Notes under the pieces: model-generated | Seen by the model: the letters and a program-made list of their open reading frames with translations, nothing else | The model's database searches: none | Told to the model about the DNA's origin: nothing | Made by a program: the position numbers and the translations under genes | Assembly (NCBI RefSeq): GCF_000150275.1 | Contig: NW_002060949.1 | Location: 2,477,836 to 2,541,835, forward strand | From: Trichoplax adhaerens | Lineage: Eukaryota; Animalia; Placozoa | DNA length: 64,000 nucleotides | Direction: 5' to 3' | Part shown: piece by piece, positions 255 through 35,000 of the stretch | How the letters are laid out: every line of letters begins with the position of its first letter | Position numbering within the stretch: the stretch's first letter is position 1

Positions 255-6423
<6,169 letters not shown>

Positions 6424-11072: not shown

Positions 11073-14000
11073 ATGCATTTATGCATATCATCATTGTCGT
11101 CATCAACTACTAGTTTACTGATGCCATCGCCGACTCTAGACTATTTAACATTAATAATATTTTCCTTGATAACAGCTTTTACACTATCGATTTTATGCTC
11201 AGTTTTGAATCGAAAAAAGAAGATGTATAACCTAACGAATATGAAAGGTCGTGTTACCATCTACTCTACCACTGGTTGCCCACATTGCAAGCATGCTAAA
11301 AGTGCCCTTAACGAGTTGGGAATTCCCTTTGTAGATGTTAACTTAGATAACTATCCGCAAGCAAGGAAAGAAATGGAAGAGAAAACCAATCGACGTACTG
11401 TACCTCAAATCTTTTTTAATAATATCCACGTCGGTGGTAACGATGAATTTTCTAAATTGGTGAGCAATCATTTAGCTAGATGCCCCTTACAGCCCTAGTA
11501 CAGTAGTAGGCGTAATATTGAGGCGATTTTCACATGCCTTTGCGCTTGTAAATGGTTCTCTTTTTAGACGATAGTCGTACAGCTTACGATTTGTACCACC
11601 ATGATTGAGCAAATTTATACCACATCACTATGATTTAGAAAATTGAAAATTTACTTTTTCTGAATAGTTAAATGCAATCGTTGTTGGAATTGTTTAAAAA
11701 AACTACTGTACCAGAGCCCTGCCATTGCTATATTTTCTTTGCCCTGACCTACCCTTGCCGAAGTGAACTGTACTGAATAAGAATCATTTAAAGTATCTAG
11801 TTACTGCTTACTCAGAGTAAAGTACAGCACAGTAGTTCTGGCCAACTTATGGCAGTAATCGCTATTTCTTTAGTGATACCATACTGTTGATAAATCTATA
11901 AAATCATACTGTATACTGTACTCGTAAAACAGACGTAAGCCAAAACTAAAATATATCAATGATTAATTACAAGTATCAGTACCCAGTAAATAGTAATTGG
12001 ATTGTTGATCATTCCTCAAAGACGTGTTGATGAAAACTACATTTTTAAATTGGTTCTATCGGTAGTCACTGCTCTTATTTGGTGTGCGTACATTTTTTTA
12101 CTGGCTCCAGCATGTCTTCAGATACGGTACAGTAAAAAAAGAGACTTCTAGGGTAAAATTCGGGACTGGAAGTAGCTCTTCAGTGCAATAAATGCAGTTG
12201 CGTATTCTTCCCAATATACACGTACAGTATATAAGTATATGATTATAAAACATGGATAGTGGTTTCGTTAGCAGAAATAGGCCAAATAGCTGCCTTGTAT
12301 CATAAGATGGCAATTTTAAAATATACGTTATTGTATTATACTATGCAGTATCTAACTGGCATACAGCAGGTAGCAATTTGCATAAAGAAAACAAATTTAT
12401 TTCAAAATGGTGGATTTCTCAATGCTTAATCGGTAATCGATGAGTCAGGCCAGCTATTTCGTCAATCATCTCTTGAAAGAATTTTAAGACTAGTAGTCCC
12501 TGATCTTGCAGTCCACATTTAGTTTAGTCTTACCGATCTTACGTATTCTACGATGTGGTATCGGAATGACAATCATCGTATTTCTTGACCTACGTATCAT
12601 TTTTTAATCAATAATATCTCAATCTGCAGTACTGTACACTACACCTCTTGCACTTGAAACTTGGATGCGAAGTTCCTTGGTATCAATTATTTATTTCATT
12701 TCTTGATAATCTGCCAATACTTAAAGATAATCTTGCTCGCATTAGTCAATACTGTCAACAGCATCTCATTAATTTTTCGAGGGTACTTATGGATGATAGT
12801 AAGAGTCTACTCGTATTAAATTGTATTATGTTCTAACTATGAGAAATCTATTTGATCTCTCTGCTTACACCCGGTAGATTACTAAAATACAGTACGTATA
12901 GTCAATTTGATTTTGATTAATTAATTCATGTACAGGAGAAAGACCGATTGCAAGAATTAGTGAATGAGGTAACAAATAATGAACCTCCCGCAGATGCTCC
13001 CCAAATACCGGATCCCTCGACTGCCGTACAAAGTAAGTTAACCTTAATGAGGAATTTCAGTTATTACAGCGTATAGTAAGTCTATTCTAGCTCTTAGGAG
13101 AAACAAATACGAGTATGCAGTTGACCTCAATTTTTTAAAGTATCATGATTTAGTTGCTGATTTTGCAAAATTTCTGCTCATGATGCTGCATGGATTTGTC
13201 GCTTGTGTAGTATCAAATGGCACTAAAACTGGTGGCTAATATTTACCCATATATCCTACAGTACTGTACATTGTATAATAAAGTACAGTATATGTTATAA
13301 CCATATTCCCGTATATTACATTAATCAAGAAGTTTTCATCCATTTTGGTTAATGAACATGAAAAATAATTGTATTGAAAATGGCTCATTAATAAATAAGT
13401 GAACCATGCATGACCGAATTCACTCTGCCTGTACTGTACTAAGTTAAAAGCGAGTGAGATATTCATGGCGATAATATTGCACTACTGCATATTACAAACA
13501 CTATAGGTGATGTACGGTTTTGTACACATAATCTGTCTGTAGAAGGTTGTACGCTCGAAAATAAAATACGCATTTACATAAGTAAAATCCAAAGAATATT
13601 CTCGTAACGGCGGAGGTAAAGACTAATATCGCTGACCTTGGCATGGATACTTTTAATTATAGGTGATGTCAGCAGTGACATAAAGTGTGAACCTGATGAA
13701 TATGCTGTTTTAGCGAAAGCCCTCCGCGAGAGTGGTCTTGTCTCAAATCACAGGAAAAATTTAAAGTGGCATAAAAAAACTATCATAGGTAGTGAGGCGA
13801 CGGAATGGCTAGCCAAACATAAGAATATAGGTAGTGTAAATACATCTTTACTATTATGATAAATTTCTGGCAATGACCCGCTGTCCCTATGTCATGGTTA
13901 GATTTCAGAAATCATGATAATATACAAAACTTATATGCTTAAAGTTAAACATTTTATTACCTACTAGATATTGATGAAGCCTTAAAGCTTGGACAAGAGT

Positions 14001-17938: not shown

Positions 17939-18604
17939 AAACCCCATTGTCACCCCCTGAGTACAGTAGAGTAGGTAGAGTAGAGTAGAGTAGAGTACAG
18001 TACAAACCAAACTCACTACAGTACTTTACACTGTACAGTGTACAGTACAGTACAAGCTTTCGGGGGGTGACAAAATTGGGTTTGTACAGTACAAACCCAA
18101 TTGTCACCCCCTGAGTAGAGTAGAGTACAGCAGAGTACTGTAGAGTACTGTACATGTACAGTACAGTACTGTAGAAGAGTAGAGTAGAGTAGAATAGAGT
18201 ACAGAAGAGTACAGTACAGTACTGTACAGTACAGTACTGTAGAGTAACAGTACAGTACTGTAGAGTACAGTACAAACCAAACTCGCTACAGTACATACTT
18301 TCAGGGGGTGATTTTCGGATCGGATTTCGGATTTTATGTAGCACTTTCAATCGGATTAAATGTTTAGTCGTAGTGGGGTTACAATACACTACCCCTGAGT
18401 AGAGTACAGTACAGTACAGTAGAGTACAGTACAGTACAAACCAAACTCGCTACAGTACATACTTTCAGGGGGTGACAATTGGGTTTGTACAGTATAAACC
18501 CAATTGTCACCCCCTGAGAAGAGTAGAGTAGAGTAGAGTACAGTACAGTACAGTACAAACCAAACTCGCTACAGTACATACTTTCAGGGGTGACAATTGG
18601 GTTT
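17939..18604. mobile_element. Tandem array of four short inverted-repeat (MITE-like) units with internal (AGTAC/AGTAG)n microsatellite
   Basis: Left arm AAACCCAATTGTCACCCCCTGA at 17939 (variant), 18093, 18496 and partially at 18391. Its reverse complement TCAGGGGG(G)TGACAATTGGGTTT ends at 18083, 18486, 18604 and partially at 18311. The internal motif TACAAACCAAACTC(G/A)CTACAGTAC is present in all four units. Mobility is inferred, not shown. Confidence 0.6.
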
Positions 18605-24951: not shown

Positions 24952-27900
24952 TTATAAAAGTGTCACCCCTTTGCTATGATTAGTATTAACCATGGACCTT
25001 TCCTGTGATATTTGCTCGGCTTTGAAGGCAACTTTTGTCGATTTCTTCTGTTGCCGTCTTACCTAATGGGGAAATAACATGTGGATATTATCGTAATTGA
25101 ATAGCCGGGGGGTATTAAGATAGCTGCAAAGGCTAACCTTTTTTTGTCCTTTAACTTCCAATTTTCTTCGTCGTTTCTCCTCCTTTGTCTCATTCTTACT
25201 TCTGGTAATATTTGTCTTGACTGTTATGATTTAAAAAGGCATATTAAAAGTACTCGTAAGTTAATATTACTAACAATTAATAAAACAAAATCAGTGTCAA
25301 TAGAGTTAATATCAACAATTTAATTTGCAAACAGTACCTGATACTACTTTCTCTTTAGGTGATTTTCCAGGTAAAACTCCTAATGGTATTCCAGTCTTTT
25401 TCGATAATATTATCTGAGGTTTATCAGATATTTTCTAAGTAAATAAAGTTAACCGTTACGGGAATTTATGTTTACATTTTTACAATATGCCATACGCAAT
25501 ATCAAAAAATACCGTACGTTTGCGTTCTTTTTAGGCGGGTTTGCAATTATTTTGGGGTGATTGTAAGCAGTTGAACGGGTTTCTAGTATCGATTCACAAT
25601 CCCATAGTTCACGTTTTTCTTCAACCTCTACCAATTCAGTTGATTCCTCACTATCTGACTCTGTACTTTCGGTTTCATTGTCATCATCTAGATCGATTTG
25701 ACTTTCTTCCATTATATCACGTGGTTCGGCGTTAGTTGGCTTTTTTGCATTAAGTGGACGACTTTATATTGTAAATAAAGTAAAAGCAAACTTTTAATCC
25801 ACTTAGTATGGTTTATAAATTGGCATGTTAATTAATCATACATTTAGGTATGAGCAAGGCTTAATTTTGTCATAGCCAACTTACTATGAATTATCCATTA
25901 GAGACACTTGTTCTTCAATTAATCTACTCAAATGTTGTTCAACTAATTCTCGCCTTTCATCACCAGAAATATTATCACCACTATCATCAGGAGCACCGAT
26001 TTCATTGTCTTCATATTCCTCCAGTATCTGCGAGAAAAGGTTTAAATGCGTCAAATCTGGAACAGCTGCTATTATCAATACTTATTCTATAATAACACTA
26101 ATAGCGCTAATATTGCAAATTTAAAGTACACATAAAAGAGCTTACGATCTCAATAAGTATACTCGTATATAAAATCAAAGGATTTCTACCTTGTCAAATC
26201 TGTCATCTAAATGAGTTAAACCTATAATTATAGATTAAAACACATTCAGGCGGTTATATATTTATTTAGGCCATCGAAAGACTTTTGAAAACATGTATTT
26301 TGGCAATGATCAGCTTATTAACAGTATGTCCTAACCTTCTCCTCGTCTTACAACAGATGATGTCAATGATAATCCGGTAAATTGTGAGACGTTATCGTCA
26401 TCAGCCATGGAATTCATACATTCGTCACTACCAAATGAATCATTTCTGTATCTTGACATATCATTTTCATTATCATCGTATCCCCCTTCGTCCGCGTCAT
26501 ATTCCGCTTCATCTACAACATCGGCCTATTTGTTAAAAAAATAAAGAATTCGATATACGTGTGGTTAGAAAGATGATATAAGTACATGACGTTAATGCTT
26601 TTTACAATATAGGATGTTTCTATTTTAAGTTCTAAATGTAATTTACTTTTCGCATGAAATCATCTTCCAATATGTTATCTGGATCATCGAGATCAAGAGC
26701 ATCATCTAACGCGGCTACAATATCTGGATCCCATTCTGGATGAAGTCCTGTTATAATTTAATGTTTATATATAGTAGGGCAATTTAATGATACATACGCG
26801 AATTACGATACTTATTTGATTTATCAAAATATATGACAATGAAAACTCTCACAAGGCCGACTAATAATATCACTAAGTTAGTAATTACGAATAGACTGAA
26901 TAGTAAAGGCTACGTACTCAGATTATCATTAAGAAGACATTTTCTAACTTCTAGTTACTACCTAGCAATGATATTGTAATCATAAGTTACCTTGCGATTC
27001 AAGACCACGATTCAGAAGACCGACATCATCTTCACGTTGCGACGGAAAGGCATTTGCCGGTAACTTTATTTTTGACTAACAGGGTAATGATTAATATTCC
27101 AATACGGCATAAGGTTAAATGCACGATATTCATTACAATCTAGCCATTAAATCTACTAGTAATAAGTCAAGCTCAACTAACCTTATTGGAACCGATGTAA
27201 ACAAAATCAACATTGTCACTTGAGGTTGTGGCTTTATCATGGCGTTCTTTAAGGTGCTGCATGTAGTTGTAATCGTCATCAAAATAGACACCATACTTCT
27301 CCTGTTCGTATACCCGAGCTTGATAATCATCCTGTAATAATAAACTTGAGGCATTAAAAACTATTAAGGCAAGATTAGTGCAGTATAGGAATAAATTAAT
27401 CCATCTATAAAACTTTGATCGATATGCCTTCTAGAATATTGGTCAATAACTAATAGCAATGATCATGTAGCAGGCAGTACTTTAAGTTCTCAACGACATC
27501 ATTTGACTCACTTATTACTATCATATAGTCAGTATACTACTGATGTATTCAGATTGCTGTAAAGGACGATAATGCAAAATTCAGCTAGTGCTTTTGGTAA
27601 TCTCATCAACAATTAGAGAATACACTGTACTTTGAGCTTTAACTATAGCAGGCTGCTAAACTGGTCGATCTCATTTGTAAAGATAGTAGTAGGAAATATG
27701 CAGCGATCTTGTAGGGTACTACAGGTTGTAATCAACAAGCAGCATGTGCACTTGTGCAGCCTATTTAGAATGCTACTCCTCATATTCGGTCGAGTACAGT
27801 ACTGCTATTACTAGATATAATTCTGCCAAATTCACTTTCGCCTCCAGATACAAAGAATCTACTGTACTGTAGTCAATACTTTAAGTAAATATGTTACTTG

Positions 27901-28364
27901 TATTGATTGATAGTGGAGATTGCTATACGAGTATATTATCATCCTATGGGCCTTCGCTGTATTTAAGTTTGGTGCATGTAATATTCAAATTCGATTCGAT
28001 ATAGTGTCGATGATCATGTTACTAGAACGCCGAGTTACCTCCTCCATCTTTGGCTGTCTTGTTTCTTCATTCTTGTCTGTATCAAACGGGTGTAAAACAT
28101 ATTGCGGTGCTTGATCATCGGCAATAAGTGGATCTCGCTGACTTCGATGAACAAGTTGGAATCGATAACCTTCTTTCTTGCCAATAAATGGCTTCTTCTT
28201 GCGACCCTATTTGAAATGATCGACATTTTGTTATGTCCTTCGATTACGCTTGTACATTCGACGCTTACAGTATATACCGGATAAAAGTTGCTACACTTGG
28301 AAAAGTACAATCGCATAGTATTCTACTTGGATATCAAGTCATCTATCTTAGATATACATACCAT
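24952..28364 (-). CDS. LTV1: Pre-40S assembly factor LTV1. Exons 28362-28364 (ATG only), 28039-28206, 27182-27331, 26991-27075, 26647-26747, 26336-26525, 26190-26221, 25885-26027, 25518-25761, 25338-25434, 25138-25220, 24952-25062
   Basis: GRKKKPFI..FQLVHRSQRDPL, YGVYFDDDYNYMQHLK, DPDIVAALD..LEDDF, SSVVRR..HLDDRFDK, WDCESILET.STAYNHPKII, LSKKTGIPLGVL and a basic C-terminus ETKEEKRRRK..RRQQKKSTKVAFKAE. Confidence 0.95.
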
Positions 28365-28605
28365 ATTGAACTTTTATAAAGTCTACAATTCTCTAAATCC
28401 CTTCAAAATCGACAACAAGGTGGAAAGTTAATTTCTCCGCATGCGATCCAAGCTGAAGTTTATTTTGTACAGTACAGTACCCACCGTCACCTCACAATTA
28501 ATCACGTCATCCACGTCTGTAACAACAGTACGGGTGACGGTAATGAGGAGTCCGTCAATCGTGGATTGCATCTGTAACTCGGTTAGGCTGACTCGCATAA
28601 AATGT

Positions 28606-29017
28606 CACGTGGTCTTATGCTGGACTTCAATGTGGCCGCAGAATGCCCAAATCTTCAGTACGGTGCTTTACAGTATAACAACTCAAACATGACTTTGCTC
28701 TTGAGTTCGTTTGGTATAACTAGGCATCTGGAATGACTCATCCATCAGCTACAGTACTACGTACTGTCAGGTTCTACAGTACCTTAAAACAGACGACTGT
28801 CAACAGTACTGTACACTGTACAGTATTAGTACAGTTACAGTACGATAGTTACAGTACAGTACTGTACGCGAGAAGGCTAGTCAGCTCATAGCAGGGATAT
28901 CTACTGTACACTGTACAGTATACAGTTTGAGCCAGCTAGGCAAAGGCAAAAGGATCAAATCGAAGGCTGCCAGACCTGAGCACAAGAGCACGTGGAGAAG
29001 AGATTAGTCTTCCCTTT
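28606..29017. promoter_or_regulatory. Bidirectional promoter between LTV1 and the snoRNA host gene: canonical E-boxes CACGTG at 28606-28611 and 28989-28994, and a 5'TOP/TCT-like tract CTTCCCTTT at 29009-29017
   Basis: The motifs are read directly from the sequence. Myc/Max E-boxes are typical of animal ribosome-biogenesis promoters and pyrimidine starts are typical of snoRNA hosts. The TSS itself is inferred. Confidence 0.55.
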
Positions 29018-29302
29018 GGCGTTGATAGTGGCATCGAGAGCATGACAAGTGCGATTATTCAGCACTTGTCGATGTAAAGAGAGTAGATAAAGGACGACTT
29101 AAACTTTTAAATCAACAAACTCCAAATACAGAAGAGAACATGCTTGATTTTTCGCCGTTTTCGATTGGAGAAAGTTGAGAAACACAGATGGGAGGATCTG
29201 CACCATGTTGGTAAGCTTCGGATAAAAGTAGATTACAGATACTGAATTTAGTATCGGCTATTACAAATAGACATGCAAAAGTCATCATACTGGCCTGACA
29301 CT

Positions 29303-29379
29303 TACTAGGATGAGAAGAAAAATAAAATATAACTTTCGTTCTTCTGAATCGAATGATTGTAATTCTTAATTCTGATACT
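29303..29379 (+). ncRNA. SNORD59: Box C/D snoRNA SNORD59 (U59/snR54) homologue; predicted guide for the 18S Am1031-equivalent site
   Basis: ACTTTCGTTCTT lies directly before box D' CTGA (29344-29347) and is complementary to the conserved 18S sequence AAGAACGAAAGU. Degenerate box C AGGATGA at 29307-29313, C'-like ATGATT, box D CTGA at 29372-29375. Confidence 0.85.
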
Positions 29380-29499
29380 TGAGCTTCACAAGGCTATTGC
29401 TAAAAATGGCTGTTTTTATTACCAGTATGGTAGCTATGACACACTCTTCAATTGCATGCTCATGATATTGAATTAATGATCGTAATCGTTTATCTATTG

Positions 29500-29708
29500 T
29501 CGGACTGATGATTTGGAATCCTACGGTAGCAATCACCTGAAGAATAAAGATATCATGGTCTTGTCATCGCTGTTTAATGGATAAACTACTCTTATACTAC
29601 CAACCTATCAACCTGCCAGAAAAACAAGATTGCCCTGCTCTCACATGTCAGATGGCATGACATCGTAGCAAGAGTAAATAATGCGGCACAGTATCGACTG
29701 AAGATAGG
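29500..29708 (+). ncRNA. Candidate long sno/scaRNA with box C/D ends and an internal H/ACA-like hairpin
   Basis: (C)TGATGA at 29505-29511; CTGA at 29537-29540 and 29698-29701; ANANNA box AGAAAA at 29628, then a hairpin (TGCC..ATGTCA/TGACAT..GGCA) and ACA at 29688-29690. Lies inside the snoRNA host; no target recognised. Confidence 0.35.
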
Positions 29709-29922
29709 AATGGGATGGACGATGCACTATACGTCAACATCAAGTTTCTTTCTTTGATTAAGAAAATTTTGGGTAAATTGATTGTTATATACTTTTACAG
29801 TATACTCGTATACTCATAGCCAATCTATCTAGAATTATAATTCTACCGTAGTTATAAACCCGTTCGTAAAAAACATGTATTACTAGTTATTGTAGTTTGT
29901 TTCATAATACAGTACTGTATAT

Positions 29923-30003
29923 CGTTGCTATGATGCAAATGAATTTCTTCACCTGAAGATCACCGTGTCGATTAATAATCGAGCTTTTTAAAACTGAGCA
30001 ACG
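29923..30003 (+). ncRNA. SNORD36: Box C/D snoRNA SNORD36 (U36/snR47) homologue carrying both guides
   Basis: Terminal stem CGTTGC/GCAACG and box C ATGATGC. D' guide GAATTTCTTCAC-CTGA is complementary to 28S GUGAAGAAAUUC; D guide CGAGCTTTTTAA-aa-CTGA is complementary to 18S UUAAAAAGCUCG. Confidence 0.93.
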
Positions 30004-30231
30004 TCGACATTATACATCTACTACGTCAAAAGTGTCAGACTGAAATTACTGGTATGGCTAAAATGTAAATGTATTAATTGCCTATATTTCTCTATATTCA
30101 ACTTTGCTATCATCAGTTAAAAATTACTAAAATGGGTAGGACGTATCCGTACACGCAACACTGTCCAGCCATTAAAAAAATGGTAAGTCTACTGCTTTAA
30201 ATTATTAAAATTAGAGTGAAAACTTTTGGTC

Positions 30232-30306
30232 AAGCTTCATTGATGACATACAGTATATATTAGACAGAATGCTATATGACGATTATTTAAGTCTCTGACG
30301 AAGCTT
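30232..30306 (+). ncRNA. Box C/D snoRNA, family unassigned
   Basis: 7-bp terminal stem AAGCTTC/GAAGCTT, box C TTGATGA at 30240-30246, D' CAGA, C' ATGACGA, box D CTGA at 30295-30298. Sits in the middle of intron 30183-30405. Confidence 0.82.
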
Positions 30307-30584
30307 AGCAGTAAATATATCCAACATCCCAAATGACGGGCCATTGATAACTTTTTACTACTGAATTTTATCCTATAATATACCTGTTTTTATAATTGTT
30401 TGCAGGCTGTAAACGACTGGGCGATTGCGAATGATTTAAAAGCAAGTACAAGTAGCCTTATGATGGTACGTGATACAGTACTCGTTGAACTATTTTAGAT
30501 AAAATCTAAACATATATATATATATATATCAATATTGTATTAGTTATTTCTGAATGTACAGCTTCGTATAGTGTTATCAAAGTG

Positions 30585-30707
30585 AGTGGCTGATGATTTA
30601 GCTTTGGTACTGGGCACGGAGTTGATTTACAACTTGTATCCAGTATCACACTAGTTACATTGAATCGTATCAATGGTGAAATTTCGCTAGGGGCCATCTG
30701 ACACTAT
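30585..30707 (+). ncRNA. SNORD67: Box C/D snoRNA SNORD67 (HBII-166) homologue; predicted guide for U6 snRNA Cm60
   Basis: Box C (C)TGATGA at 30590-30596. TAGGGGCCAT directly precedes box D CTGA (30698-30701) and is complementary to U6 AUGGCCCCUG; the +5 rule selects the first C. Flanking intronic stems ATAGTGT/ACACTAT and TGAATGTAC/GTACATTCA. Confidence 0.88.
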
Positions 30708-30794
30708 CCGTACATTCAATGAATACATTAATGCTTTAGAATTTTGTGTATAAAAGCAATTAACGTACTGCGTGTTTTTAGAAAATTGGAAATA

Positions 30795-30925
30795 TGGCGT
30801 TCCTCGAGCGCGCTGAGACTCTTTCGAAAATGAAAATTCAGTTATGTGATTGAGAGCACTCTGGACTTGTAACTTGATCACCTGTACCTCGGAGGCTCGG
30901 ACATCCATATCGATAGTTTACGCCA
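30795..30925 (+). ncRNA. Candidate box H/ACA snoRNA in the last host intron
   Basis: GC-richer island closed by TGGCGT/ACGCCA, with a hairpin containing a GCTGA/TCAGT stem, an H-box-like AGAGCA at about 30853 and ACA at 30901-30903. Pocket geometry is imperfect. Confidence 0.3.
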
Positions 30926-32066
30926 GCTAATGTGAATTCCTCAAATTTCTTTATAGTTGTCAATAAAACATTTTCTTTATTTCAACAAAACTATTTATTA
31001 TGGAACTTGTGTGAAATCAGTTAACCAGTTAATGAAAATTAGCCAGAATCACAATGGACACTTATTTAATTTATAGAAGATTTTAATGCATGAAAGCGGA
31101 TAAAAGTCATCAATTCATAGATTTTGAAGTAGTTCTAGAAATTTAGACTCTAATTAACATCGTCAGCGGCTATATCAAGTCAGCTCATAGTATGCAGCCT
31201 ATGTATTCAGTAATAAACAGTACTGTAGTTACTTTTTAGATATTCATAAACTCCCAGAATAAATATTCGTAGTATTACCGTACAATATTGTCAATGGCAG
31301 TATCAAGGACTACACTAATGTTGAACATACAACCTTTATGCATTGATGTTAAACTTTGTTCCTCAAGACTTTGAAACTATCGAATACGGTGAAGTAGAAT
31401 TTGATTTATTTATTATCATCGCAGCCCGAAATGATGTAAATTTTATAGTCAATACAGTAGTAAGAAAATGAGATTGCGTTGGTAAAAACACGAAGATCAT
31501 TGAGACACCGATGCACCAATATCAAATACCAATTTTCCATAAAAACCACCGCTGTCTTAAGCATTCTTTAAGTACAATCGTCGGTTATTCTGCCTTAAAG
31601 TTAAAAGAGGTAAAATGCAACCCTGCATGATAGAGGACTTTTTAGAATCATCTCATCGTCTATCGCCGAGATTCGGGCGCGCGGACAGGCAGACACTCAA
31701 TACTGCCTTCCGTCAAACCCTAGCTAGTACGATGGGCTCTATTATGATTATACTGGACAGTGTAAGGTATACTGTATAATTAGTTATGTAATAATAATAA
31801 TAACAATTATACAGTAAATTATTATACGCTCAATCCGAGCGGAAGAAGAAATCTACAATCTAAATAGTTCAATCAGTCCATGTTCAAGGCTAAAAATTGT
31901 GTCTATATTTTAGTGTTCTAACTTGTCATTAGTTACTGATTACCATTACATAAGCGTATGTACAGTATAATATAATAGAGAAAAGTAAGATGTCACTAAA
32001 GAGTTCCGATGAATGCTAATTATGCAGATATCATAAAGCAAAGAAGATAATTCATGATCATTATCT

Positions 32067-35000
32067 ATGGACAGATCAGAATTATGCGATAGAGGTATTG
32101 TACGCGTATATAGTAGAGATTAACAATATAGTCGTCATTGGATGAGTTAGTTTTAAAATTTCATGGCAATGATGTTTTGCGTCTACATAGGGTGTAAACT
32201 GTGTAGTGAATTAATTTCGTGCATCCGACCTTGCATCCGTAAATCAATCTTATGCCATTTGCTATCATCAGCACAATATTATGGGTAGTGTTGTGTAAAA
32301 TGTAAATGCTGTTCACTTACTATTTTATAACACTCTATCTTGTTTACAAAATTCAATCTGGACCTATTCACTATATAATTGAATCGATCTCGATTCTCTT
32401 CTACTGTAAGGTATTACTAGTTTGCGGTAAACTACTGTACCTTGCATAATAGCACTAACAGTACGAGTAATGGCTTGCCAGAATGGACATAGTAAAATCT
32501 GTACCACTAGAAATTAACCTCTGTTCTTGAAACGTACTTGATTTTCGCTAAATTAATACTATACTATTATTATTACGGTAGAAAGCGTAATCAATAAATA
32601 GATTTGATAATTCAACTACCAAAGTAAGTAATCAGCAAGGTCATTGACGATCAAATGAGAAGGAAATTATTAATATCAGTGTATGAAAGCAAGTTAAGTA
32701 AAGCTTTCTCTACCATGTATCTTTATAACCGACAGATAGTCTATTAACGCCTGCGGTTAATAATGCCAGCGTTGGCTTTATTCACTCTCCGGGCTGCTGC
32801 CACTGGATATACAAGTAAGTTTTTATAAAATAAAACACAAATAATTAACATTGGAATAATGGATCTTATTGTTATGATCGCTCAACCGTTAGCTTCCATC
32901 TTGACGTAATTTTAGTAATTTAAGATACTATTCTTCCTATGGGATATAAGAAATAACGATCTAGGTAATGCAGGCCAGAGAGTCATAAAAATGAACATTA
33001 TAAACAAGAATAAAAAAAAAGTATCGTAGAACAAGATACAGTAGTTGAATCATGTAGTAATCACTATATCATCTATGAATAAATAGAATAAATTGAAATA
33101 AGAGTGTAGCACAAGCATTTATACTCAAAACACGCTTATAATGCAATGGTGATGATTAAATATATCCGATGATACATGCAGTAGGTTATTTCATACAATT
33201 CGGTTTAACAGGGGTAAATCTAAGTTCCTGTGATTCGTATAATCATATTACCATAAAGAAAAAATTCTGCAGGTATTGATGAGACGCTATAGCGCCATAA
33301 AATAGTACTAAAATTATCTGCGATTATCGTCAAAGTCCCTTAGGAGATTTATTATTCAGACCGTTACAATTTTCGCGGGTTTGATTAACATGACTTCAAG
33401 AAAACATTAAGATAGCACAGGCAATACTGTAAGCTACATTGCTTAAGTGTTGTATCATCATTGCTGAGTTTAAAGATTGCGGACGAGCTGGTGTAAAATT
33501 GCATGATTAAAATCTGTGATGAATGTAAACATATGTTAATAAGAATATACATACGTAAATCTAATTTAAATCTTATTGTGCTCGTATACAGCAGTGAGCC
33601 ACTTAAATCTCCGTTATTTTAAGTGAGGTATTATTATAAAGTCTATTAAAAGCAAAGCTGATCTTATACTGTGCAAAATCGATAACCCAATCGATCTTCC
33701 CAAGATATCCGTAGCAATTTCAACATTTTTTTACATCACTACTATCCTATACTTAAATAATATCGTGGACCCATGAACTAAATATTTTTATTAAGACTTT
33801 CCAATTGCAAGATTGACTACTTACTTCTTAATTATATTTATTAACAGAGGCACAACGAAAACAGTTTTATGGGCTTCACTCATCTCTGCAATAGGAGGTT
33901 TACTCTTTGGCTATGATATTGGTAAAATTTACTTTTCACCTAAATTTAATTTTAATGAAATTTATTACTCACTACACAATTATGCTAGTACGTGTATTTA
34001 GCAGCGAGAAGGTAATTCATAAATTTTTCAGTAAACAAGTGGATTGGCTAAATTAAAGTATAGCTTGAAAGCGTAAGATTCCTACCATTACTATTTAAAT
34101 TTATATGCTCCATATCACTTCATAATTAGGCGTTATTTCCGGAGCTATTTTGCAGCTACAGAAAGTTTTCAATCTTAACTGCATTGAACGCGAGAGAATT
34201 GTCGGAGTCATGCTAGCCGGTGCTGTTGGTGGTTCTATTGTCGGAGGTGCAGCAACTTTTATTCTGCAGTTAATGAAATTATGTAGCATCTTTTCCTGTT
34301 ATCTTATCGTAGTGACATAGACTATAAAACGTCCAAATTACTGCGATTAGCTCTCGCTGTAAGTGAATGATAAACTTGACAACTGCATCTCCCCATTGAT
34401 AATTTCTAATACGTATCTCGTTCCTTTCTGTAGCGAAAGATCATACGAGCACTAAAGCATTTGCAATCTAGTTATGGTGTCTCCTAGTCTTAGTATACAG
34501 TTTACGGCACATGATTTATCTATTTTGTTCCTAGATAAAGATTGATATGCGTACAGTATATTTGACACTAAATAATGGAATAGATTCATTTTACGATTTG
34601 GAAAGCGTCATCTTGCATGAATAGAATTTTCGTTTTTTCGTCGATTTTTTGACGACCCTGTTCGAAAAGCGTTACGTCGAATTGTATAATTCAATATGTG
34701 ACAGCTTTCTTGTGACAAGCATTATAATTTATGTAATTTTACTGTAAAATCTCTATACTTATTATTACTGTGTATTCAAGTTAGAAACGATATCCTTTTA
34801 CAATCTAGAATGTAACCTCTAATACTGTCTAAAATTCTTTTGCTGACATAGGTTATATGATCGATAAATTAGGACGCTGGACATCGATATTATTAAATTC
34901 AATTGTATTTATAATTGGTGCGTTGGTGATGAGTCTAGCCCATAATTATGCTACTCTGGTACGAAAAAAATTTAATTACTCCACCTCTTCTTTTTCCTCG

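Follow-up and report, generated by a model that had tools for sequence, protein, structure and literature searches.

A spliced five-exon gene lies next to LTV1

We analyzed a 64,000-nucleotide (nt) stretch of the genome of the placozoan Trichoplax adhaerens (assembly GCF_000150275.1, contig NW_002060949.1, positions 2,477,836 to 2,541,835), here called the window and numbered from its first letter. On its plus strand, between about 28967 and 30985, lies a five-exon gene, each of whose four introns contains exactly one box C/D small nucleolar RNA (snoRNA) element; on the minus strand, pointing away from it, lies the gene for the 40S factor LTV1. We read the five-exon gene as a dedicated non-coding snoRNA host that is divergent from LTV1, and assign this reading a probability of roughly 0.85. 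A first-pass annotation, made from the letters alone, had proposed a spliced non-coding host of the UHG/GAS5 type here, and the four introns with one box C/D snoRNA each, together with the absence of a credible open reading frame (ORF), bear that proposal out.

The RNA evidence consists of assembled contigs from four runs (X5, X6, X7, and X13) of four studies, placed on 27600-33400. X13 is recorded as RNA, and X6, X7, and X13 are RNA-like, having no unique contigs on intergenic stretches and showing the introns of LTV1 and of the gene downstream. X5 is DNA-like, with even coverage of intergenic DNA and no joints. Both X5 and X13 come from a sister strain, designated organism B. Contigs of this kind cannot reveal transcript starts, ends, strand, or discrete small RNAs. 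Genome-wide searches covered 105.6 Mb in 1414 contigs.

Short exons with canonical splice sites had been predicted from the sequence, and RNA contigs from three independent studies (X6, X7, and X13) have joints that define four plus-strand GT..AG introns, one around each snoRNA element. Every host junction is present in two or three runs, and exons 1 to 5 are chained via overlapping contigs; in X5, which covers intergenic DNA, none of the host joints is seen. Exon 1 (28967-29210; X6 contig 28967-29210, X7 contig 29034-29210) has a provisional 5' limit and contains a CACGTG E-box at 28989-28994, the second of two in this region, and the pyrimidine tract CTTCCCTTT at 29009-29017. It is followed by intron 1 (29211-29529, 319 nt; joint 29209/29529 in X6 and X7), exon 2 (29530-29772; contigs 29529-29771 in X6 and X7, joined at either end), and intron 2 (29773-30116, 344 nt; joint 29771/30116 in X7 and X13). 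Exons 3 (30117-30182) and 4 (30406-30465) are each flanked by joints in X6, X7, and X13, and the same three runs carry the joints of intron 3 (30183-30405, 223 nt; joint 30181/30405) and intron 4 (30466-30781, 316 nt; joint 30464/30781). The last exon, exon 5 (30782-30985), contains the anticipated poly(A) signal, AATAAA, at 30962-30967; contigs reach 30945 in X13 and 30959 in X6, the 3' end given here is a putative one, and depth falls to zero over 31092-31673 in X6, X7, and X13. Unspliced contigs of the host introns are also seen, as expected from precursor RNA.

Joined according to these junctions, the five exons give a spliced RNA of 817 nt, which we conclude is non-coding. The first-pass annotation had seen no real ORF, and the longest one in the spliced RNA is 60 amino acids (aa) long, a length within chance expectation (equalled in 16% of shuffles, P = 0.16).

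Each intron carries one box C/D snoRNA

The four box C/D elements announced at 29303, 29923, 30232, and 30585 were all found at those places. Numbered by intron, snoRNAs 1 to 4 are separated from the 3' splice sites downstream of them by 149, 114, 99, and 74 nt, respectively, if snoRNA 3 is taken to end at 30306. For family assignment, the 64-kb window was scanned against Rfam at gathering thresholds, and 28300-31300 was scanned permissively (E ≤ 10). Guides were evaluated by pairing anchored directly upstream of CUGA boxes against 18S and 28S ribosomal RNA (rRNA) and U1, U2, U4, U5, and U6 small nuclear RNA (snRNA) of the same genome, with null frequencies taken from 2000 random guides. As unanchored antisense matches of 11 to 13 nt with G-U pairs are common throughout the exons and introns, only box-adjacent pairings were counted. 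Some assembled ribosomal DNA copies are shortened or fragmented (contig C1377, loci L003 and L005): one 18S copy is 1537 nt long, and one 28S copy scores 1235 versus 3286 bits.

SnoRNA 2, in intron 2 (29925-30002, plus strand), is SNORD36 (U36). It is the sole match at gathering thresholds in the whole window (Rfam RF00049, 72.9 bits against a cut-off of 30, full model 1-77), and a genome-wide search finds it in single copy. A 7-bp terminal stem encloses the C box AUGAUGC (29930-29936), the D' box (29953-29956), and the D box (29994-29997). The D' guide (29940-29952) forms 13 perfect base pairs with T. adhaerens 28S 2321-2333, predicting methylation at Am2325 (null 0/2000), while the D guide (29980-29991) forms 12 perfect base pairs with 18S 616-627, predicting Am618 (null 0.002).

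SnoRNA 1, in intron 1 (29302-29380, plus strand), is a U59/snoR23-like box C/D RNA, recognized by sub-threshold Rfam matches and its 18S guide. Its boxes are a degenerate C box GGAUGA (29308-29313), D' (29344-29347), C' UGAUUG (29354-29359), and D (29372-29375). It scores 46.3 bits (E = 9e-4) with plant snoR23 (RF01598), short of the cut-off of 70, and 28 bits with SNORD59 (RF00273), short of the cut-off of 45; it is nonetheless the best SNORD59 match of the genome, and the runner-up has no guide. The D' guide (29330-29343) pairs perfectly over 14 bp with T. adhaerens 18S 958-971, predicting Am962 (null 0/2000), and a 12-nt core of this guide agrees letter for letter with that of the Rfam consensus. 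In human, SNORD36 is the assigned guide of 18S Am668, and SNORD59 that of 18S Am1031 (PMC11550049). The snoRNA 1 site is homologous to human 18S Am1031, and those of snoRNA 2 are homologous to 18S Am668 and a 28S A (PMC11550049), so that the earlier claim of U36 and U59 guides for 18S is upheld by perfect pairing with the organism's own rRNA at homologous sites.

SnoRNA 3, in intron 3 (30232-30306, plus strand), is, by its fold and boxes, a candidate box C/D RNA of no assigned family, with no Rfam match at E ≤ 10. Its layout is textbook: a 7-bp stem (AAGCUUC/GAAGCUU), C box UGAUGA (30241-30246), C' box UGACGA (30277-30282), and D box CUGA (30295-30298). Among 18S, 28S, the stretch of internal transcribed spacer and 5.8S, U1, U2, U4, U5, and U6, the D guide (30284-30293) finds one match alone, 10 AU-rich base pairs with T. 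adhaerens 28S 3401-3410 that would address U3404 (null P = 0.017). We know of no organism in which this 28S site is methylated, and for that reason snoRNA 3 is treated as having no assigned target.

SnoRNA 4, in intron 4 (~30583-30707, plus strand), is a long box C/D RNA of ~125 nt, identified by its boxes, fold, and U6 guide. Its C box is CUGAUGA (30590-30596) and its D box CUGA (30698-30701); the fold, with z = -2.1, combines an outer stem with a stable hairpin inside. The D guide, ending at 30697, forms nine perfect base pairs plus one G-U pair with T. adhaerens U6 56-65, a duplex in which U6 C60, fifth from the D box, occupies the methylation position. C60 is one of only eight methylated U6 residues, and the match is given weight on that account. 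At E ≤ 10, 30583-30707 matches no Rfam family, SNORD67 included. Of the three families that the first-pass annotation had named, SNORD36 is thus found above its cut-off, SNORD59 below it, and SNORD67 not at all. SNORD67 has been shown experimentally to be required for U6 C60 methylation in mouse and human cells (PMC12048515). Human and mouse SNORD67, which resides in a CKAP5 intron, resembles snoRNA 4 in being a long, intronic box C/D RNA and in having a D guide that sets U6 C60 fifth from the D box. In contrast, snoRNA 4 fails to match the SNORD67 model, its duplex is short (9 bp and one G-U), and its host is a different gene. The organism B RNA contig shows two base differences in snoRNA 4, one at 30685, in the distal D guide outside the 9-bp core, and one at 30708, just 3' of the D box.

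Two further candidates were rejected. A second snoRNA in intron 1 (29426-29529) matches nothing in Rfam, lacks an anchored guide, and folds no better than shuffled sequences do; the first-pass annotation had listed two weaker candidates, but the rest of intron 1 offers neither an Rfam match nor a box-adjacent pairing with rRNA or snRNA. A minus-strand match to the H/ACA-like snoR83 at 30943-31049 has E = 1.7 and is taken as chance.

A non-coding host whose useful products would be its introns

In the reading that we favor, RNA polymerase II would transcribe the five-exon plus-strand gene from ~28967 to ~30985, and the useful products would be the introns rather than the spliced RNA. Splicing, debranching, and exonucleolytic trimming would release the snoRNAs, as for intronic snoRNAs elsewhere. 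The RNAs so processed are predicted to guide methylation at 18S Am618 and 28S Am2325 (SNORD36), at 18S Am962 (the U59-like RNA), and at U6 Cm60 (the long box C/D RNA), all in the numbering of the organism's own RNAs.

Several points weigh against this assignment. The strand of the RNA is deduced from the GT..AG orientation alone, and the discrete RNAs of 75 to 125 nt, the 5' end, and the poly(A) site are inferred rather than directly visible in contigs. SnoRNA 1 lies under both Rfam cut-offs, and its genome-wide SNORD59 E-value is just 0.057. SnoRNA 3 has no convincing target, the AU-rich 28S match being its sole candidate, and a 9-bp U6 match like that of snoRNA 4 is not rare when taken alone (P = 0.08 versus all targets). 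Finally, the 60-aa ORF does exist, and the stop codon that breaks it, described below, is found in one contig only.

The gene shares its architecture with vertebrate UHG/SNHG1, GAS5, and other SNHGs, which likewise are multi-exon spliced RNAs without a meaningful ORF, each intron carrying a single box C/D snoRNA. Further features in common with the vertebrate UHG/GAS5-type hosts are a poly(A) signal, numerous upstream ATGs, and strain-variable exons. For the 5' terminal oligopyrimidine (5'TOP) start of such hosts, the T. adhaerens gene offers CTTCCCTTT at 29009 as a candidate, and an X6 contig already covers bases ahead of this tract, from 28967 on. Non-coding snoRNA hosts also include the dUhg genes of insects and UHG-like hosts of fungi. 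To our knowledge, the cargo set of a U59-like RNA, U36, an unassigned RNA, and a U6 C60 guide matches no known host. Human SNORD36A/B/C and SNORD59A/B have the same guide elements and homologous targets, and are likewise intronic, the former residing in RPL7A introns and the latter in ATP5F1B introns. The human hosts are protein coding, however, whereas in T. adhaerens both RNAs share one non-coding host, and the T. adhaerens U59-like RNA falls short of the Rfam cut-off.

The gene is of an ordinary, widely known kind and reveals no new mechanism. The possible novelty raised in the first-pass annotation is correspondingly reduced, as U36 was listed for Trichoplax in 2009 (PMC2655684) and non-coding snoRNA hosts are known from vertebrates. 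The list of Hertel et al. comprises U3, U18, U36, U76, U106, U17, a doubtful U71, and one novel H/ACA RNA (PMC2655684). As the genome has a single SNORD36, their U36 must be the one at this locus, and the 18S target that they give, A615, agrees with our Am618 given a 3-nt numbering offset (PMC2655684). Their list has no entry for the U59-like RNA, the U6 C60 guide, or snoRNA 3, and does not give the host structure (PMC2655684). The locus therefore adds three unlisted box C/D RNAs to a published Trichoplax inventory of about eight snoRNAs, supplies the host structure for the known U36, and shows that a placozoan uses a non-coding host of the type that carries a single snoRNA in each intron. It also suggests that protein-centered annotation may hide a sizeable share of the snoRNA complement in early-branching animals.

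The divergent region and the pairing with LTV1

The predicted divergence from LTV1 is confirmed by the minus-strand gene model. LTV1 exon 1 (28362-28468, minus strand) comprises the 5' leader and the ATG at 28364-28362, with RNA contigs reaching 28436 in X13 and 28468 in X6. It is followed by the GT..AG intron 1 (28207-28361; joint 28205/28361, CT..AC on the plus strand, in X6, X7, and X13) and by exon 2 (28038-28206; contigs 28038-28205 in the same three runs), the first full coding exon, whose product begins GRKKKPF. This one exon alone matches the Pfam LTV domain (PF04180) with 47.1 bits against a cut-off of 28 (E = 4e-12; minus strand, 28042-28206). The other three LTV1 exon ORFs have no Pfam match individually.

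Between the outermost transcribed bases of LTV1 (28468) and the host (28967) there are at most ~500 bp, and the two genes would be transcribed divergently from this shared region. The putative promoter region (28469-28966) contains CACGTGG at 28606-28612 and palindromic repeats of the ACAGTACTGT type at ~28790-28925; no unique RNA contig from X6, X7, or X13 falls on 28570-28763. Both of the CACGTG boxes that had been described are present, at 28606 and 28989. The second of them and the CTTCCCTTT tract both lie within the X6 contig, which starts at 28967, 42 nt upstream of the tract. The first-pass annotation had taken CTTCCCTTT for the host start. The motif is there, at 29009-29017, but its role as the transcription start is not supported, given the RNA contig that begins upstream of it, and the tract may not be the only start of the host.

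There are 11 copies of the 10-nt palindrome ACAGTACTGT in the window, where 0.1 would be expected. The palindrome forms clusters at 28803-28865, in the LTV1/host divergent promoter, and at 18163-18261, with single sites at 13258, 18848, 29909, 31217, and 40478. Contigs tangle at 28803-28920 in every run; the motif is therefore a high-copy element, present also in the RNA runs. In intron 2, just upstream of SNORD36, the palindromic motif is altered in X6 at 29911-29916, where the five nucleotides GTACT are inserted and a T is replaced by A.

Co-regulation of the host with LTV1 is unproven, a suggestion drawn only from adjacency, a shared pathway, and the two E-boxes. We lean slightly toward the view that the pairing is incidental, reflecting a compact genome with many short divergent promoters, in which neighbors need have neither selected co-regulation nor a functional link. 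The cargo agrees with this view: the earlier picture of a 40S-themed cassette is not supported, as SNORD36 also points at 28S, another of the RNAs is directed at U6, and a further one lacks a clear target. A pair of CACGTG boxes within 645 bp has P ~0.02 given the local composition, and the window-wide count of six is at expectation. Hertel et al. stated that the putative snoRNA hosts of Trichoplax lack conservation in human (PMC2655684). Six LTV1 look-ups gave four cDNA-like (complementary DNA-like) contigs and two genome loci, and the two other eukaryotic assemblies have no Rfam snoRNA within 10 kb of LTV1, a comparison that does not address placozoans or cnidarians. A search with a 55-aa LTV1 exon returned LTV1 proteins of ~60% identity, with no recognizable placozoan entry among them. 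On the other side, the host and LTV1 both serve ribosome production, both E-boxes have the extended form CACGTGG, and RNA contigs of both genes are found in the same three RNA runs. That the two genes form a selected, E-box-driven (Myc/Max-type) bidirectional ribosome-biogenesis unit conserved across placozoans seems to us unlikely. If it were so, the coupling of snoRNA supply to 40S assembly factors through a shared promoter would predate bilaterians, and a dedicated U6 Cm60 guide would have existed in the placozoan-bilaterian ancestor.

Coding potential and the downstream gene

A rival reading is that the host also encodes a micropeptide. The 60-aa ORF runs from 30132 to 30851 across exons 3 to 5, and besides being the longest in the spliced RNA it has all of its exon junctions between codons (phase 0 introns). 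Nine ATGs precede it in the spliced RNA, however, its length is within shuffle expectation, and its exon-4 and exon-5 pieces, which were scanned, have no Pfam match. Moreover, in the X13 RNA contig of the sister strain, base 30146 is A rather than T, turning codon 5 from TAT into TAA. We accordingly regard translation of this ORF into a micropeptide as quite improbable. In host exon 2, organism B is one A shorter at 29763-29766 (seen in X5, implied in X13).

The next plus-strand gene is itself spliced, with exons 31809-32092 and 32734-32814 separated by a GT..AG intron (joint 32092/32734 in X6, X7, and X13). An ORF near 33813 in this gene looks, from its translation read by eye, like the N-terminus of a sugar transporter. 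That the five exons are merely upstream leader exons of this gene, whose first seen exon is 31809-32092, is highly improbable: the two lie on the same strand and contigs do not show transcript ends, but no run has a joint from 30782-30985 to 31809 onwards, the zero-depth stretch in the three RNA runs lies between them, and the AATAAA at 30962 comes just past the contig ends at 30945-30959.

Three assembled bases are contradicted by every run with coverage there: all four runs give A for G at 29429 and G for A at 31981, and three give G for A at 30840. These discrepancies suggest either private alleles of the reference strain or errors of the assembly.

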